Shown in pieces: positions 9,001 through 53,156 of a stretch of 64,000 bases of DNA. Source of the DNA: Bigelowiella natans CCMP2755 (taxonomy: Eukaryota; Protista; Cercozoa); NCBI GenBank assembly GCA_000320545.1, contig ADNK01002595.1:1-64000 (forward strand). Reading direction: 5' to 3'. A program made the translations under genes and the position numbers. Position 1 is the stretch's first letter, and every line of letters begins with the position of its first letter. The notes beneath the pieces are model-generated. The model was given only the letters and a program-made list of their open reading frames with translations, searched no databases and was not told the origin of the DNA.

Positions 9001-9480
9001 GTTCAATGTGGCGCCATCATGAGATGAACACATGCGCCGAGACTTTGTTGCTCTTGAGCAAGTGGTAGCTTCCGTGCATGCCTCTGCTTGCAAGATCAGC
9101 TAACTGTGGCAACGACATGCATCACAATGTGTGTCGTGGACAGCAGTGACACTGGCGTCCGATTGTGCTGCCATCAATCACGAATTTGTGACTCACAAAA
9201 TGCACGTGAATGCTCTTGTCGACATTCCAAATTTCAGACATTTTCAATCTATGAATCTGCAGATCTAAATGCATGTTGTTAAGCCACACATGTAGACGTG
9301 CTGCAACAGCTGCTGTCACGCTCTAGCTGTTGATGAGCACGAAACGATGTGACGCTGCGCACACACGCGTGCTAGCGTGGTGCGATGTCCACGTTGACTA
9401 GGCGACATCAAATGCGCAGCTAGACATAGGGATGAAATCTTGAGGACAAAATCAATGATGTTGATGGCACAGTGACGATC
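9001..9480. other. TpA-depleted island 1
   Basis: About 11 TA in 480 bp by hand count, 10 of them in TAG or CTA context; rich in CA/TG. Confidence 0.6.
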
Positions 9481-10096
9481 AGCCTTCGAGGTAACATCAA
9501 GACAAGTTCTTCATCTGCGCGTTGCTCTGGCACTTTCCCACTTCAATCAAAGAGGAAAAGGGCCAACACAAACCGCTGCAAGAAGGAAGGGGAACGAAGA
9601 TCCAGTAGTAGCAGCAACAACAAAAGTAGAACATGACAGCATGATCCTCCTCGTCACCATCTCGCTCCTCCTCCCTTCGTCTTCCTCCGCGCCAACTACT
9701 CCGTTGTTGTTTTCCCCCGTCACCACGACCCATCGTCATCTTCGATGTCTGACCTCGAGAATAATTTCCACAGAGTGTAATGTCTTTATGTACTGCGACA
9801 ATGATTCCAGCGAGGTTTAACCAAAGAACAACTCGCATCTGTCGTCATGTCGTCATAGATTGAATTTAGTCTACCTGCTTTGTTCTTCTCCAAACAATCT
9901 CCCGACAAATCTTATGCCGTTCCACGCTTAATACAAGTGATTCGGACTAATACAGTACGGAAACGCAGCGGAAAAAGCCACTAAAAATAGAACTGCTTTC
10001 CAAAGAAGATTGGAAAAAGTTCTTCCAGTGCGACTTCATTTCGCAAAAGTCGCGAGGCAAAACTGCACTGTTTTTCTGATTTCTTCGCGCCGTAAG

Positions 10097-16829: not shown

Positions 16830-17280
16830 GGAGGGAGGGGAGGAAGAAATACTTAGTGAGAAAGGAGGAGCTGGCAGTTGTCGCTCCAATCTGTGTCGGA
16901 AAAACTTTCAGTCCACACGCAATAATTTTTTTATTTATATTCGTGGTATTAGACAGATGGGCAACACGGTGGTGCGGAGTATTTAAGTAGATGTTGTCCA
17001 ATTGTGTGAATATTAAAACGGGCTATTGACCACAGTAGCCAACTTAAAAGATCATAGAGTCACAATGGAAACAGTCATGTAGTTTCATGTTTGTCGAATG
17101 ACGAGAATGCGCAGTAGAATGGCCCGTAGAAGTGCCGATTTTTTGCGTGGGGTGGAAGCAAAGCATGTTCGGTGGCCATGTACCGCAACAATTTACTTTG
17201 TGCTTCCTGTTCAATGCATTAGCATTTGTCAACCAAGCATTTTTTTAAGGTGTTTGCAGTGCATGTGCACTTTGGGCACA

Positions 17281-18120
17281 AAATGAGCGAAAGAGAGCGA
17301 TTGCAAGTGAGTGAGAGGTGAACCAAACCTGCTAGCCTGGAGATGTCTAGATGTGGCGCTAGGGCGTCCGCAGGGTTGTGGATCAAGCTAGCAAGAGACA
17401 CGGAAATTGCGCATCGCAAGATTGAGGATCACCAAGGATTCTCACTTGAAGGCACAATGGCTGTTGGGCCAACCTCAAAATCCTCTGGTCTGCTGGTCTT
17501 CACCAGTCAGTCCTCACCAGAGACTGTTCGAGGCACTGCGTTTCGTGCACTGCAAGTGTCTACTTGCAACGTTTTGGAAGTGCAGTTTGTCATCATTGTC
17601 ATTGTCAAAGCGTGTTGCTTTGCCAAACTGCAAACAACAACGACTTACCAACACGCTGCGCTGCATGACTGAGTTGAATTCACGAGTGCAGCTCGTTCTT
17701 CTGCGTCTGGAAGCACCAGAAAAGAGAAGCTCGAGTTCGCTTCCAGCGTCATGTTGGCCGGCTTCGTGGCAAACGAGGGTGCATTTTGCTTCGAGTGAGG
17801 GATCATGGGATCAAAAGATCGAGCATTGTGCCACAGAAGTCAAATTCGCACACTCCAGCACTCACACACCTGCTAGCCTGACTAGCTGGGTGTCCCTCAT
17901 GTCGCATGCTAGCATGAGTGAGTGAGTGAACTGATGAAGCAATTTCAACGGTGCAGTTGACAGGATCATGAGATGTGCTAACTCATCCACACCCTCCTTG
18001 AACAAAAAAGACCACCATCTAGCCATGCTAGCATGCTGGCATGGAAAATTGAGGGTTCGTTCTGAGAAGCAGGCTAGCAGGGTTTGAATTCTGCGCTTCT
18101 GTGCCAGTTCCGAAAAGGTT
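17281..18120. repeat. TpA-depleted island 2 (degenerate repeat)
   Basis: 13 TA in 840 bp, 10 of them CTAG. Segment 17500-17610 is homologous to the reverse complement of 25800-25915. Segment 18019-18045 is identical to 24663-24689. Confidence 0.75.
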
Positions 18121-23254: not shown

Positions 23255-24032
23255 TGTCGTCGTCATCGTCGTCGTCGTCTTCGGTGATGATAGGTTGATG
23301 AGGGAAAATCAAAATGCAAGCCTGGCAAAGTAGACCCCTCGATCTTGAAGGCGCAAGTGGAACGCGACATCCTCATACACATCGGTACTAGACAATCATC
23401 ACTCTGCCTCAGTGGGGCTATCTAAGAACAAATGTTTGATTAGTGTTTCACCATCGGTTCATTGATGACTATATTAGAAGGAGCGAAGAAATTATTGCAC
23501 TGACTTCTTCGTGCTGTTTGTTTGTTTGTTGTCGCTGATGTTCAGGATCATTCTGGACCGTTGTAAACGACTGTGTGGCAAAGAATAACCCTAGGTGTGT
23601 GCCTGTATGTGTGTGTAGCATAGTTGGGAGGAGGATTACTACTCTCTTACCAGGAAGAAGCAATAGCATCGTTTTTCGAATTTATCAGCACATTATATTT
23701 TAATTATTTTGAGAACCCATACCTATGTGTACCATTCACAGCGCACTCTGTGGCTACGTGTTTAACTTGTCGAAGTATTTCAATGGGTGGTACGAGAACA
23801 CGCATGTTGCTGGAAGCGAGACGCCAGATGAGGTCCGTTACTCCTGCTAAACAGCAGTTGTGTTGCCTCACCCTTTGCCGTTATTATTTATACTTAATGA
23901 TGTTGTCTTTGTTTGTTGGTGCCTCGGTAATTCGTCCAGCTTGCAACCAGGCTCGCGTTGTCTCAAGCTATCGGCAAGACTATTAAAGCTTCTCTCAACC
24001 TCCTTGGAATTACTACCCTTGAGAAAATGTAA
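18412..24032 (+). CDS. RARS: Arginyl-tRNA synthetase with an inserted tRNA-binding OB domain
   Basis: KVMIEYSQPNTHKAFHVGHMRN (HIGH), NYFGDEGAHIAK, FDHDFFESE, LLKSNGTGLYATKDLALA, YVVDASQTLHFQQ, KMSSRKG (KMSKS), GPYNMYAYTR, ending LNLLGITTLEKM*. The first coding exon appears to be only ATGA (18412-18415). Confidence 0.95.
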
Positions 24033-24866
24033 TTGGCTGTTTTCCAGTGCAAATTGGCGTGCCAAAATTCCAAATATCACGTTCTAACCTCTAGTTGACT
24101 ATTCGAATGCAAGCAGTTTCCATGATTTGCGCCTATTTGCATTTCTAGCTTGCATGTCTACACTATCTGGTATAGCCAAAATAACATCACAAAATGATCT
24201 TTACGCCTTGTCTAGAGATGCTAATAGCTACGTACTACACGTGCTTATGAACATGTTATGATATAGCTAAGCCATGCATGATCAGATGATGTCCAGAACT
24301 CTACATGCTAGCATGCTACCCGTGTGCACAGTACGTGCACTAACCCAGCTAGACAGCCTACACTAGCAACAGCCTACTGATGCGGGTTGTACGGGTGTGC
24401 GAGGTGCGTGATCTGTGCTAGCATGCGCAGCAGGCCATGCACGCTTGCACGCTAGCACGAGCTGCACGCATGGCTGCGTTAGCTGCATCGTGCAGAACAC
24501 AAATGTACTTGCATGCTAGCATGGCTCATTTCACTTGCTTGCAAGCTTGCGAGACACATAGAGAGCGTGATCATGCTAGCATGCGACCGTCATGAATGAT
24601 GCGACTCAATCATCGCATTGCATCTCTTGACGACAGCACGCGACCACCACCCCATCTAGCTGCTAGCCATGCTAGCATGCTGGCATGGATGCATGACTGG
24701 ATGATGCACAATGATCGCTGGATCGCATTCTGGCACTGCAACTCGTGACAGCAAGACCACGGATGGTGTGGTGCTATAGTGCCCATGCTAGCATGCATGG
24801 ACACACGTGTAACCACACATGCACATGCAAGCCTAGAGCCTGTGCATGTGTGCATGTGTGCATGTG

Positions 24867-24899
<33 letters not shown>

Positions 24900-24956
24900 A
24901 AATGTAAATCAAAGAAACATAATTTGTCATAATTAAGACAAAATTTCATGTCGCAG

Positions 24957-25353
24957 GGAATTGGCACAAAATTTTGTCCAGATGGGAAGTCTGTTTTGGT
25001 GTCTGACGGGGGGCATGACAAATGTGCCATTGCTGCTTCTAAAACGACTGTACCTCAGCTCTTTCTCTCCATCCTATGTCAAAAATCTAGAAGATCGGCG
25101 ATTTAATCTTGACTGCATTTTTGCTCCTGGTGCTCCAGAACATCATCAACAAATGATTTAATCCTAAATGTCAATCACATCACTTGCACGATTGCAGGCA
25201 GCACACAGGAGCAGATGTTCGATGCTGCAATTCAAAATCAACTTAGATCCAAAAGAATTCTCTCAATTTCTCTAAATTTGCTAGGTCGCCAAGGACACCG
25301 TGAAAGATGTTGTGCGCGGACACAACGGAACAATGTTTGCTCATGGACAGACA
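24957..25353 (+). pseudogene. Kinesin (kinesin-1-like) motor-domain gene fragment with introns, hypermutated
   Basis: Exons ~25059-25129, 25198-25226 and 25285-25353 join in phase to FNLDCIFAPGSTQEQMFDAVAKDTVKDVVRGHNGTMFAHGQT, against the kinesin consensus F.FD.VF....QEQVY...AK..V.DVL.GYNGTIFAYGQT. The match stops before the rest of the P-loop (GSGKT). Confidence 0.85.
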
Positions 25354-26040
25354 CGCTGTCATCTTTTTCTGCTGATGAAAGGACCCTTTCACAAATTGAT
25401 CTCAGCATCGAACGAAATTGGCACATCGAATTGAGGAAGAAGAGCAACACGTGAGTGCTCGAACAGTTCAGGATCACCCGAAGAAAGAAAGAGGAAACAT
25501 TGAAACAATGATCACAATTTGATTTTCAGGAAAAAAGTCATTCATCGCAGTCTAGCAGTGTCACTGGGCGACGTTGTTCGAATCGAAACAGTTTCAAAAG
25601 CCTCCAAAGCAACAGGCGACGTGATTGGTGCACGTGTGATCATGTGAGATGGAAGCAACTGCAAGAAAGGAAGATGAAAAGAAAGAAGTGCCATCATTGG
25701 AGTGATTGAGTGGGACAAGCTGATTCATCCACGCTGGCATGCCAGCATGTCCCCCCAATCAACTGGATCACCAAGAAAAACAAGACGAAGAATCAAGAAC
25801 AATGAGAACAATGAGAATGATGATGAAAAACCACATTTCCAAAGTGTGACAAGACACTTGCAATGTGCGAAATGCAGTGCCTCGAACTGGCTTCAGTGAG
25901 GCCCTGTAGGACTGACAAGTGCTTTCATGATTCAAGCAAAAGATGATGATGAATCGGTGGCTGTGCAAAATGCATGTGATTTAGGGCTGACGACAAGCAA
26001 CAAAACAGGTCTACAAGCATGAACGTCACAACAGAGCTCA
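25201..26040. repeat. TpA-depleted island 3 (kinesin relic plus degenerate repeat)
   Basis: 7 TA in 840 bp, all in TAG or CTA context. Contains the inverted homolog of 17500-17610. Confidence 0.8.
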
Positions 26041-26256
26041 TTTTTACCGAAAAACGATCAGCGTCGCCGTCCCGATGCTTCCGGAAGACTTTGGGATTTG
26101 GATGCGTTTGGGTGAAAATGAACGGTTATTGGGATAAATCCCGGTTATTGAATTTAAATCCCGGAAAAGAAAGATCTGTGAAAGTTCTCAGAACATGCTT
26201 TGAGCCGCTGTGACGAGCGCTTGACACAATCAAATTCTTCAACACTGAGGAATACA

Positions 26257-27267
26257 ATGCCGTCCAAGATCACCACAAACGTGCAGCACGCTCTTCGCGA
26301 TACAGGCGCTGGCCGCTTCTTCTGCAATTTGTTTTCTTACATTGCCGGATTCACTCAATTGCTCTTTACGAAACCCGCTTATCTCGACCATTTTCTGAGG
26401 CCCTCGAAGCATGTGAAGTCTGTGAAGTATGGGACACACAGTTCGCAGTTCCTTGATGTTTTTCCATGTGAGTCAAAGTTGGGCAAAGATGCTCCTGTGA
26501 TAGCTTTTGTCCATGGCGGCGCATGGGGCTCTGGTCATCCATACATGTATCGCCTTCTCGGCGTTCGTCTTGCGATGGAAGGCTTTCATTGCATTCTCAT
26601 TGGCTACCGCACATACCCTTGTGCTGACATCCTTGGCCAGCTTGACGACGTGCAAGAAGCACTTTCGTACATTCGAAGAAGAATTGGTTTTGGCGAGCTA
26701 TCTTCAATTGGCAAAAATTCACAAATCTATCTCTCCGGGCATTCCAGCGGGGCACATGTGGTTGCACAGTGTGTTCTACAGAGAGCAAAAACTTTGGATT
26801 TTATCAAAGGGGTAATAGGCTTCGGTGGGGCTTATGACTTAAAGTCTCAATACGAATGTGAAAAGTCGAAAGATGTACATGAACTGAGTCCTCTCAAAGC
26901 TGCAAACAAGGGTGTGGAGAATTTCAATCGTTTCTCTCCTTTTGTAATTGCAAGCAATCTCAAATCCTTCACTGGTGCCGGTGCAGAAGATGATGGCAGC
27001 GAGCAGAAACAAGCAGTGTCAGTGCCTAAGTCCCACGAGCAGAAACAAGCTTTGTCAGTGCCTAAGTTTTTACTCCTACACGGGCTAAAAGATACAACGG
27101 TACCCCCGTCACAATCGGAGAACCTGATGGCCGCGTCCAAGGACAAGTTCCCTTGTGAGATGGAATTACTGGATGGAGTGGCTCATTCAGATATTGTAAC
27201 GGATATGTTTGACCTCGATAAAGAGATCAAGTACCTAGAGCGCATAAAAAAGTTTTGCAACATGTAA
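26257..27267 (+). CDS. Intronless alpha/beta hydrolase, isoprenylcysteine methylesterase (ICME)/BD-FAE-like
   Basis: Oxyanion motif FVHGGAWGSG, nucleophile GHSSGAH, acid LHGLKDTTV and His VAHSD. Contains a 36-bp tandem duplication (EQKQAVSVPK/EQKQALSVPK, 27001-27066). Confidence 0.9.
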   Translation: MPSKITTNVQHALRDTGAGRFFCNLFSYIAGFTQLLFTKPAYLDHFLRPSKHVKSVKYGTHSSQFLDVFPCESKLGKDAPVIAFVHGGAWGSGHPYMYRLLGVRLAMEGFHCILIGYRTYPCADILGQLDDVQEALSYIRRRIGFGELSSIGKNSQIYLSGHSSGAHVVAQCVLQRAKTLDFIKGVIGFGGAYDLKSQYECEKSKDVHELSPLKAANKGVENFNRFSPFVIASNLKSFTGAGAEDDGSEQKQAVSVPKSHEQKQALSVPKFLLLHGLKDTTVPPSQSENLMAASKDKFPCEMELLDGVAHSDIVTDMFDLDKEIKYLERIKKFCNM

Positions 27268-27338
27268 TAATGTCATATTGTTAAATTTACCAATTTAACG
27301 TAACCCCAGCTTTTCAAATGATGACATGATAGCTCTTT

Positions 27339-50870: not shown

Positions 50871-51300
50871 AAATTTTCGTTTTCACAGGGTACTTGTAAA
50901 TGTGTTGAGAGGATGCCATCACGTATGACTATCTGCTATGCTATGTGCTGCATGATGAGGCAAGTGAGGGCGTTGCATACAAATCAAGCAAGATCACTTG
51001 TTTACATGTTTAGATGTGTTGTGTGCCATTGTGATGAATGATTGATTGCGCTCGTTCTCTTTGTCAATGCGCACACCTAAACTACACAGCCAAATGCGTA
51101 GAGAACAATTGCAACATTGCTGCTACGCTGCATTCATTGTCACGCTCACTTTGCTACAGTGACAAGATGTGTGAAACGGCTGGCGCAAATGCAATGATGC
51201 CAGGATGGTTACAGCTACTAAACATGTTTTCTGCTGCTATGCTGCATCGTGTGAACCGTTCTGTGTGTGTTTTCGCATGCCATTTTTGTCACCCAGTGTT

Positions 51301-52140
51301 GTCAGTGCTGCGTGCATGTCTTCTGATGTGCTAGCCCAGTGTGGCCTGTGATGTCCAAAGTCCAAAGCTGTGGTTCTGCAGAATCAAAGAATGCGTCTTG
51401 ATCGTTCACGAGTTTCTTCAGCAGCGCTCTGGCGTCCCGGAGGTGCTTTGATCGGCCGCTCTCTGACAGCAGCTGCACGAGAAAGGTCTTGTGCTGGGAT
51501 CTTCGTAGTCGAACCCCACCGCATTCTTCGAGGTCGCGCCTTCAAGGTTGCCCTGAGCTCAGGATTTGGGCTGAGATCACGCAGAATTCGGGCGCCTGTG
51601 GGTTCAGCGTGATGTGCTCTGAAGCTACCTGGAGCGTCTCATTGACGGTGAAGAGGCATTTCAGCTGCTGCTTGACAGAATCGTCAAGACCCTTCTTCAT
51701 CAGAGCCCTCGCATCCCCCGCCAGCCCGGGTGATTGCAATGTTGTTGATCTCAACTGCTCCAATGGAAACACTCTATTTTTCATTTTTCCTTCCTTCCTT
51801 CCTGCTCTTCCTTCATCACCCACGCGCAGGTCAGAGATTTGTCTCTGCAGGTCATCTGTCTCAGTGCTCGTGGCCGGAGGAAGCGAAAAGATCCCTGAAA
51901 TCTTCATGGGGGGGGGGGGTTCAATTCAGGAGGACGTGGATGAGTTGGAACTTCCCAATGATGCTTTGCACAAATCGTCGGCCACGCTCGTCGTTGACAG
52001 CGGCGTGCTGAAATTGATGTGCGGCATCGCTGCCAAGGCATTCAATGGGGGCCGGAGCGCTTCGCGAGGGAGCTGGCTTGCTCTGCAGGCCATGAGAAAG
52101 GATCATGGGATGGATGAAATCTGAGACTGCTGAAATCATC
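51301..52140 (-). pseudogene. TpA-depleted relic of a possible helical-repeat gene (left part of island 4)
   Basis: Minus-strand frames with stops give DARALMKKG...LNPQAPEFCVISAQIL...DARALLKKL; only 4 TA in 840 bp. Confidence 0.35.
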
Positions 52141-52743
52141 CCAAGGGGGTTTCACTCCCCGGGTTTTGGTCCGTGCCATGCTCGGAATCCACTCCAAACT
52201 TCTTCCGAAGCACCACAGAAGACTTCTGGACGTGTGATGAGAAGGTCCAGAATTGTCCAGAAAGGGGTGTGAAAAGGTGGATTTTCAAGGAAAAAAATCG
52301 AGGGCAAAAACTTTGGGTGCCGCGGAAAGGGCCCCCTTGCGCGTTGGCTCAAAAACACATGCTCAGAGGCCGTTTCCACACCAACTCCATCACGTCCAGA
52401 AATGACCACTCCGAAATTCGAAAATTGAACGTTTCCGCGCCAAAAAAGTGTGTTTTTTGGTGATTGGTGATTTTGTGTGATGAAACCTTTCACTTTGGGC
52501 AATCAATGAACATTTTGTGGATGGTTTTTGAAGAAAACATTGAGGAATTTCAATTTTTGCTCATTTTGTTGTTCACACTGAATCGATCACCGAGAAATTT
52601 GGACAAAATTTGCATTTTTTTTTGGGTGAAATCAGGAAATCCTAGGTAGAAATCCGGAAATCGTGAAAAATTTCCCGGCTGACGCTGGGGCAAAACCGCC
52701 GAGCATGACACGGACCAAATTCCGAGGAGTGAAACCCCCTTGG
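52141..52743. mobile_element. Non-autonomous DNA transposon (MITE), 603 bp
   Basis: 45-bp terminal inverted repeats at 52141-52185 and 52699-52743 (41/45 identical, starting CCAAGGGGGTTTCACTCC), flanked by a direct ATCATC at 52135-52140 and 52744-52749. No transposase ORF. Confidence 0.88.
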
Positions 52744-53156
52744 ATCATCCATCATCCAGGAATGCATGCCGGTGCTCCCTTTTTGAAAACTGTTGCGGAT
52801 TTGTTCGATAGGCGCTTTGCCCTCAGATCGACTCCTGGATTTTCCATGAAATTCAGTGATCAGTAGGTTGTCGTCATAGCAGTATCCTCGATCATTTGTA
52901 GACGTATTTGGAGACTAGTTCTGAGGGCAACCTCGGTGGCAGTAGGAATAGCCTGTATTATTGGGGGTACGACAAGGAAAAAGAGACGAACAGCGATGCC
53001 AGCGTCCACTCCAGAATAGAAAGGGAGAGGGGAGAAGGGTAAAGGAATACAACGCAGCTCCTTCTCGATCACGGGTTGTCATTCAAGCGCTTTTCACGAC
53101 CGCGAAACGAAGAGGTGGCTGCAACATCTAGAAGCAGCACGGCTTACTGTGGGAAG

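Follow-up and report, generated by a model that had tools for sequence, protein, structure and literature searches.

Which process could have altered a conserved kinesin motif at TpA dinucleotides, and what brought it to the place where it acted? The question arises from a segment of the Bigelowiella natans CCMP2755 genome (positions 24957-25353 of the window, by which we mean the whole 64,000-nucleotide stretch of contig ADNK01002595.1 analysed here), in which three in-phase kinesin exons had been recognized and their deviations from the expected protein ascribed to loss of TpA. The original prediction went further, and proposed that duplicated or silenced DNA is mutated at TpA in a kind of reversed fungal RIP. 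In RIP, C>T transitions at CpA create TpA, duplication is required, and both copies are mutated.

The kinesin fragment and its parent gene

A DNA search of the 91.4-Mb assembly uncovered exactly one other copy of the segment, on the minus strand at C3459:25209-25781, and the homology was found to extend over 24791-25353 on the plus strand of the window, with 92.5% identity over 573 aligned columns. The window copy measures 563 bp and the corresponding parental segment 573 bp; it starts inside parental intron 1, keeps three internal introns, and ends 1 nt before the donor of the parental exon encoding GQTG, and the kinesin piece was therefore copied at the DNA level, introns included, and was dead on arrival. 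A start codon, a P-loop and the downstream motor exons are all missing from the fragment, and unrelated sequence follows in frame after GQT. In a tblastn search of the whole window with 30 kinesin loci of the same genome, no further kinesin exons were detected, and only the 23-residue GQT exon was matched. To judge from these features, the window segment is a truncated, non-functional kinesin (PF00225) pseudogene fragment derived from the 5′ part of the gene.

The three reading frames on which the fragment was first recognized, RRFNLDCIFAPG, STQEQMFDA and VAKDTVKDVVRGHNGTMFAHGQT, could be reproduced, and they do belong to a dead kinesin fragment. Exon limits were inferred from these frames together with the GT/AG sites of the parental gene, the exons being searched singly. 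Upstream of the exons lies a (TG)n microsatellite from parental intron 1 (24840-24898), in which the TGTA interruptions of the parent are aligned with TGCA in the window. The exon 2 homolog (24957-25012, plus strand) reads GIG[I>T]KFCPDGKSVLVSDGG in alignment with the parent; the donor that follows it has changed from GTATGA to GCATGA (25014), and the next acceptor from CAG to CAA (25082). The exon 3 homolog, NLEDRRFNLD[R>C]IFAPG (25083-25129, plus strand), carries an R>C replacement at 25114 that corresponds to a CpG>TpG transition, and the exon 4 homolog, STQEQMFDA (25198-25226, plus strand), is followed by a donor changed from GTAATT to GCAATT (25227-25228). In the exon 5 homolog (25285-25353, plus strand), VAKDTVKDVVRGHNGTMFAHGQT stands against ...GYNGTIFAYGQT in the parent, with four TpA conversions in the motif (25321, 25323, 25335 and 25342) and one silent change at 25296; the altered codons are CAC at 25321, ATG ending at 25335, and CAT at 25342. 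Altogether, two donors and one acceptor have been lost from the fragment.

The parent gene is intact. Its exon 1 is MSGGTNVKVLARC, and the gene encodes VAKDTVKDVVRGYNGTIFAYGQTG, after which an intron is followed by SGSGKTFTM (with GSGKT), SSRSH and DLAGSE, the exons matching PF00225. TpA density is normal throughout the parental locus, and none of the 24 TpA conversions of the fragment is found there (0/24). An intact parent with normal TpA content and a converted copy make a clean natural before-and-after pair, in which polarity can be fixed site by site.

Both copies were also looked for in independent DNA. The stretch is present in 14 DNA runs of 2025 from ten studies, and contigs from four independent 2025 runs contain the mutated copy with 0 differences, along with a separate parental copy at similar depth. 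Over 23500-27329, and leaving repeats aside, the contigs of these runs do not differ from the window; the variant letters all stem from the parental paralog, which is aligned there at 90% likeness. Since both copies are exact in four independent runs, the mutated copy is not an assembly artefact.

Direction, specificity and context of the substitutions

The direction of change can be read from other members of the kinesin family. NGTI(F/M)AYGQT is present in the parent and in five other kinesin paralogs of the genome, in keeping with the near-invariant motif invoked in the original prediction, and the H/M/H of the window is derived: its M and second H are I and Y in 6/6 intact genes, while the position of the first H is occupied by Y in 4/6 intact kinesin genes and by H in 0/6. 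The window donors have GC where the parent has functional GT. In the microsatellite, the TGCA units of the window are one step away from TGTA and two steps from pure TG, which gives the direction TGTA to TGCA. Paralog residues, parental GT donors and microsatellite units all indicate that the polarity is TpA to CpA or TpG in the window copy; TpA is destroyed, and the direction is opposite to that of fungal RIP, as had been anticipated.

Outside the microsatellite, copy and parent differ at 28 positions, 24 of which are parental TpA sites that read CpA (15) or TpG (9) in the window, amounting to conversion of 60% of the parental TpA sites in the fragment (24/40). Reverse changes, with TpA in the window opposite CpA or TpG in the parent, occur at 0 sites of the copy-parent alignment, which bears out the claimed A:T to G:C direction at TpA on both strands. 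Only 4/425 non-TpA positions have changed, i.e. there is ~97-fold more change per nucleotide at TpA (Fisher p = 3e-17), indicating a real and specific mutational process. The four remaining differences are G>A at 24971, G>A at 25082, by which an acceptor was destroyed, C>T at a CpG at 25114, and T>A at 25241. The parent that was to be sought and aligned thus exists, does not itself encode H/M/H, and reveals substitutions enriched for TA to CA or TG.

At the level of individual sites, the deviations in the motif all proved to be TpA losses, as proposed, although they comprise four nucleotide changes rather than three. The donor change placed at 25227 is a real TpA conversion, located at 25228. 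The supposed TAC to TGC change at 25114 has to be dropped, as the parent has CGC (Arg) at this codon and the change is a CpG transition; with this exception, the site calls of the original prediction were right in four cases out of five.

The A>G and T>C outcomes are interleaved along one strand, and this interleaving of TG and CA products, together with the retention of introns, indicates that the process acts on DNA. TG outcomes lie mostly in the left part of the fragment and CA outcomes in the right part (p = 0.036), a trend too weak to interpret. The two donors of the GTA type (25014 and 25228) have both been turned into GCA; since donors of this type contain TpA, splice sites are destroyed systematically.

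The neighbouring base also matters. When each site is read as 5′-T-A-N-3′ on each strand, conversion in the fragment amounts to 12/28 with T in the 3′ position, 6/12 with C, 4/23 with A and 2/17 with G, that is, to 18/40 for TAY vs 6/40 for TAR (p = 0.007; 37-40 sites), and the TpA sites surviving in the fragment are mostly of the TAA type. In 29 other islands of the genome, which are described below, survival relative to the outer flanks reaches 1.8 in the case of CTAG and lies at 0.04-0.18 in all remaining NTAN contexts; CTAG is effectively immune to conversion. The preference for TAY over TAR and the immunity of CTAG represent a first flank rule for the mutator. Within the same 29 islands, CTAG is denser than in the outer flanks (5.1 vs 2.9 per kb, counted over 500 bp 5′ of the repeat), and immediately to the left of the kinesin fragment (24309-24789) GCTAGC occurs often. 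It is possible that CTAG is a protected or functional motif.

The TpA-erased island and its interspersed repeat

The kinesin fragment is embedded in a TpA-erased island, the core of which spans ~1.4 kb (24507-25906) and retains CTAG 10 times. It is flanked by an arginyl-tRNA synthetase gene on one side (plus strand, PF00750) and by a conserved BD-FAE alpha/beta-hydrolase gene on the other (plus strand, coding from about 26257 to 27267). For the latter, relatives show 82% identity in one case and 59% in another, the more distant one being from the chlorarachniophyte Lotharella; the best outside matches of this gene are from chlorarachniophytes, and a Bigna1 paralog is present. Non-CTAG TpA is found at 6.4 per 100 bp left of 24507, at 1.4 in 24507-24790 (284 bp with 4 sites, bordering the fragment on the left), and at 2.3 in the fragment (13 sites), compared with about 6.5 in the parental segment, which has 37 such sites at comparable positions. 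In the 548 bp to the right of the fragment (25354-25901) there are 0, and the single remaining TpA is within a CTAG; one stretch free of non-CTAG TpA measures 634 bp. In three 500-bp bins covering 24501-26000, rho TpA takes values of 0.47, 0.25 and 0.08, the corresponding figures for rho CpA+TpG being 2.09, 1.39 and 1.75. Farther to the right, a zone of partial TpA depletion (25907-27000; rho TpA 0.33-0.48) reaches into the 5′ half of the hydrolase gene, where it may in part represent ordinary coding bias or may mean that the mutator extends into a functional gene.

The flanks of the fragment within the island are single-copy in the genome. As the parent copy was spared, and the unique flanks were erased more than the fragment, there is no duplication trigger: targeting is regional, by place and not by duplication. 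In the simplest history, which assumes that the flanks originally had the TpA densities expected of them, the fragment would have inserted into an existing island and would have been partly converted since then. The left flank is farther from the island core than the fragment, yet it is more depleted, which supports insertion after the island was formed. The locus shows that a host sequence can be mutated by virtue of its position, with no foreignness of the sequence required.

A second TpA-erased island of the window occupies 17246-17979, with TpA-free stretches at 17246-17561 and 17646-17979. Additional TpA-poor tracts are located at 51000-53000, where 872 bp (51775-52647) are devoid of non-CTAG TpA, and at 9001-9500; no copy of the repeat described in the next paragraph was detectable in these two tracts.

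A copy of a short interspersed repeat (25797-25901, plus strand, ~105 bp), itself without TpA, was found 444 bp beyond the kinesin fragment on the downstream side, where it occupies the 3′ edge of the zone of complete erasure. The repeat yielded 603 first-look candidates in the genome and has about 600-fold contig depth; its 5′ edge is sharp, it usually ends after 107-130 bp, and it occasionally forms short tandem arrays. A diverged copy with 75% identity (17512-17605, minus strand) lies inside the other TpA-erased island of the window. At all 30 of the 30 loci examined, which include the window and 29 other loci (L046-L053 and L056-L076), the repeat is found within a TpA-erased island, and the profile has the same asymmetry throughout. 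On the 5′ side, non-CTAG TpA stays at 0.1-0.6 per 100 bp over 500 bp and reaches about 4.5 by -1.3 kb, and on the 3′ side TpA recovers within 300-600 bp, against a background of 5.9 per 100 bp. A search of 24400-27100 against Rfam yielded no match for the repeat, only chance matches below gathering scores, and its folding is only modestly better than that of shuffled sequences (z = -2.3 on the plus strand and -0.95 on the minus strand), which is not decisive. Along the kinesin fragment, conversion rises in the direction of the repeat, from 2/7 through 7/11 and 10/14 to 5/5 (one-sided p = 0.03; 37-40 sites).

The island thus appears to be organised around the ~105-bp repeat, which may mark or nucleate small islands, serving as their anchor, or may home to them and insert there. 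We tentatively put forward a more specific possibility, against which we would ourselves give the better odds, that the repeat (~105-130 bp, about 600 copies) is a cis signal recruiting the TpA mutator, with polar spread over 0.5-1 kb in the 5′ direction and 0.2-0.4 kb in the 3′ direction, RTAY being the best target and CTAG immune. If this were true, hundreds of small erased islands would exist in ordinary intergenic DNA, and the kinesin fragment would be a passive reporter of a distance-dependent rate. A causal link between repeat and island would also open the targeting signal of the mutator to experiment.

Mechanism and relation to the published hypermutation

The answer to whether such a process has already been described, which had been left open, is yes. 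Mettrop et al. 2026 (bioRxiv 10.64898/2026.01.13.699255) reported de novo TpA to TpG or CpA hypermutation in B. natans mutation-accumulation lines. Of 231 de novo mutations in an NCLDV-derived and a virophage-derived region, 230 belonged to the A>G or T>C class. TpA was the site of every GC-biased mutation, the rate being about 6e-7 per site and generation, and 124 TpA-depleted, CpA+TpG-enriched clusters were found genome-wide; an ADAT2-like protein, Bn78255, was proposed as a DNA adenine deaminase. The kinesin locus, as characterized by sequence comparison, is a clean new instance of this published process: both are almost exclusively A:T to G:C, confined to TpA, seen on both strands and regional, with a TpA-depleted, CpA+TpG-enriched result. 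In the fragment, 24/28 substitutions fit the almost exclusive A>G and T>C spectrum, and hypermutation is likewise seen only at TpA, with TpG or CpA produced according to strand.

The two settings differ in the nature of the target. While Mettrop et al. 2026 dealt with a viral insert of 25-186 kb, the mutated DNA here is a ~1.4-kb island with unique intergenic sequence and a piece of a host kinesin gene, in which the ~105-bp repeat might be the sole “foreign” component. An island of this size is below their cluster criterion of three consecutive 1-kb windows. In the main text of the preprint, CTAG, pseudogenes and kinesin are not mentioned, and “repeat” occurs only in comparisons with RIP and ADAR; the reading in which the repeat recruits the mutator and the RTAY/CTAG rule are absent from it. 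Nor does it contain a parent-versus-copy comparison or a link to a short repeat.

Our account of the locus as a whole, to which we would assign a probability of roughly 85%, is that the fragment landed in a TpA-erased island, where the known, place-targeted hypermutation converted 24/40 sites. A 563-bp kinesin piece would have been copied as DNA into the spacer between the arginyl-tRNA synthetase and alpha/beta-hydrolase genes, this spacer being a short TpA-erased island; the fragment would have arrived with normal TpA and would then have been partly converted. A DNA-level process would turn A:T of TpA into G:C, with TpG or CpA as the product according to the strand affected, in an island probably organised around the ~105-bp repeat, toward which conversion would climb. 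The process acts on DNA and on both strands, is specific for TpA, regional, and independent of duplication. As to its chemistry, we infer that the adenine of 5′-T-A-Y-3′ is most likely deaminated on either strand by a recruited (zinc) deaminase.

TadA and ADAT2-3 act on tRNA A34 in a U33-A34 context, and ADAR prefers a 5′ U. The requirement for a 5′ T in A>G conversion at the kinesin locus matches both the U33-A34 context and the 5′ preference of ADAR, and its clustered, targeted mutation resembles the action of APOBEC on foreign DNA; here both strands of chromosomal DNA serve as substrate, unlike in the TadA/ADAT, ADAR and APOBEC cases. To our knowledge, the 3′ pyrimidine preference and the immunity of CTAG are tied to none of them. 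A natural dinucleotide-specific A:T to G:C mutator operating on chromosomal DNA is remarkable and may be of interest for base editing, with the principle having already been reported. Of the enzymes suggested in the original prediction, candidate deaminases are present: a genome domain search revealed six zinc-deaminase (PF00383) loci (C980, C570, C3623, C3286, C1679 and C3588) and a single locus of the ADAR/ADAT1-type A_deamin domain (PF02137; C2414:14438-15741, plus strand). With regard to thymine hydroxylases, a six-frame, exon-by-exon genome search gave no match to the TET/JBP-type domain (PF12851); the controls were silent too, and the search is accordingly weak.

It is in chemistry that an alternative deserves most attention. 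The T of TpA might be modified to a 5-hydroxymethyl- or formyl-uracil-like base that mispairs with G and yields T>C, in which case the regional process would be the same, with no adenine deamination involved. As TpA is self-complementary, sequence gives the same picture for A>G at T[A] as for T>C at [T]A, and the TAY preference is equivalent to one for R[T]A when the T strand is considered. The presence of deaminase candidates (six PF00383, one A_deamin and Bn78255) and the failure to find a TET/JBP-type domain, in a weak six-frame search with silent controls, argue against this chemistry, and we consider it unlikely. The duplication-triggered version of the process, in which the duplicated kinesin segment would be detected and mutated as a repeat, owes its appeal to the existence of a second copy of the mutated sequence, and RIP is also the analogy chosen in the preprint. 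The kinesin locus does share with RIP context-specific transition hypermutation that wrecks the coding capacity of non-functional or duplicated sequence, but it is opposite in that TpA is destroyed, the parent has been left intact and the flanks are mutated although they are unique. RIP would have affected both copies, whereas 0/24 changes are present in the parent; the single-copy flanks are more converted than the duplicate, and the hypermutable NCLDV region of Mettrop et al. 2026 is itself single-copy. This part of the original prediction, in which duplicated DNA was the target, has therefore become very improbable.

Changes confined to the copy, the 5′ U preferred by ADARs, and a copy end 1 nt from a 5′ splice site would also be compatible with ADAR-like hyperediting of a kinesin pre-mRNA, followed by reverse transcription and integration. 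A cDNA would carry edits of one strand, whereas A>G (9) and T>C (15) are interleaved here; introns and part of intron 1 are kept, there is no poly(A), and the unrelated flanks are equally erased, all of which makes such an origin hardly credible. Finally, pairwise differences by themselves are directionless, and one could suppose that TpA arose in the parent through RIP-like C>T changes at CpA, or that the differences result from assembly or sequencing errors. The retention of I and Y in 6/6 paralogs as opposed to M and H in the window, the functional GT donors and intact motor of the parent, and the exact recovery of both copies at similar depth in four independent runs reduce the probability of either to practically nil. 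The place-targeted process acting on a DNA-level insertion remains the reading that we favor.

With regard to that insertion, the breakpoint at 25353/25354 (C3459 ~25209) falls 1 nt short of the parental 5′ splice site, with the upstream introns present. This position may be a coincidence, expected by chance in roughly a few percent of cases, or it may hint at the origin of the fragment.

No new mutations at the island were seen in the contigs of the four runs. With about 13 remaining targets and ~3e-8 mutations per nucleotide per generation, far below one event would be expected, and their absence is no sign of inactivity. From the four background differences and the baseline of 3.46e-10 given in the preprint, the age of the split between the copy and its parent can be estimated at about 1.4e7 generations (95% range 0.4-3.5e7), and the resulting mean TpA rate of ~3e-8 is ~100x background and ~20-fold below that of the active viral regions.
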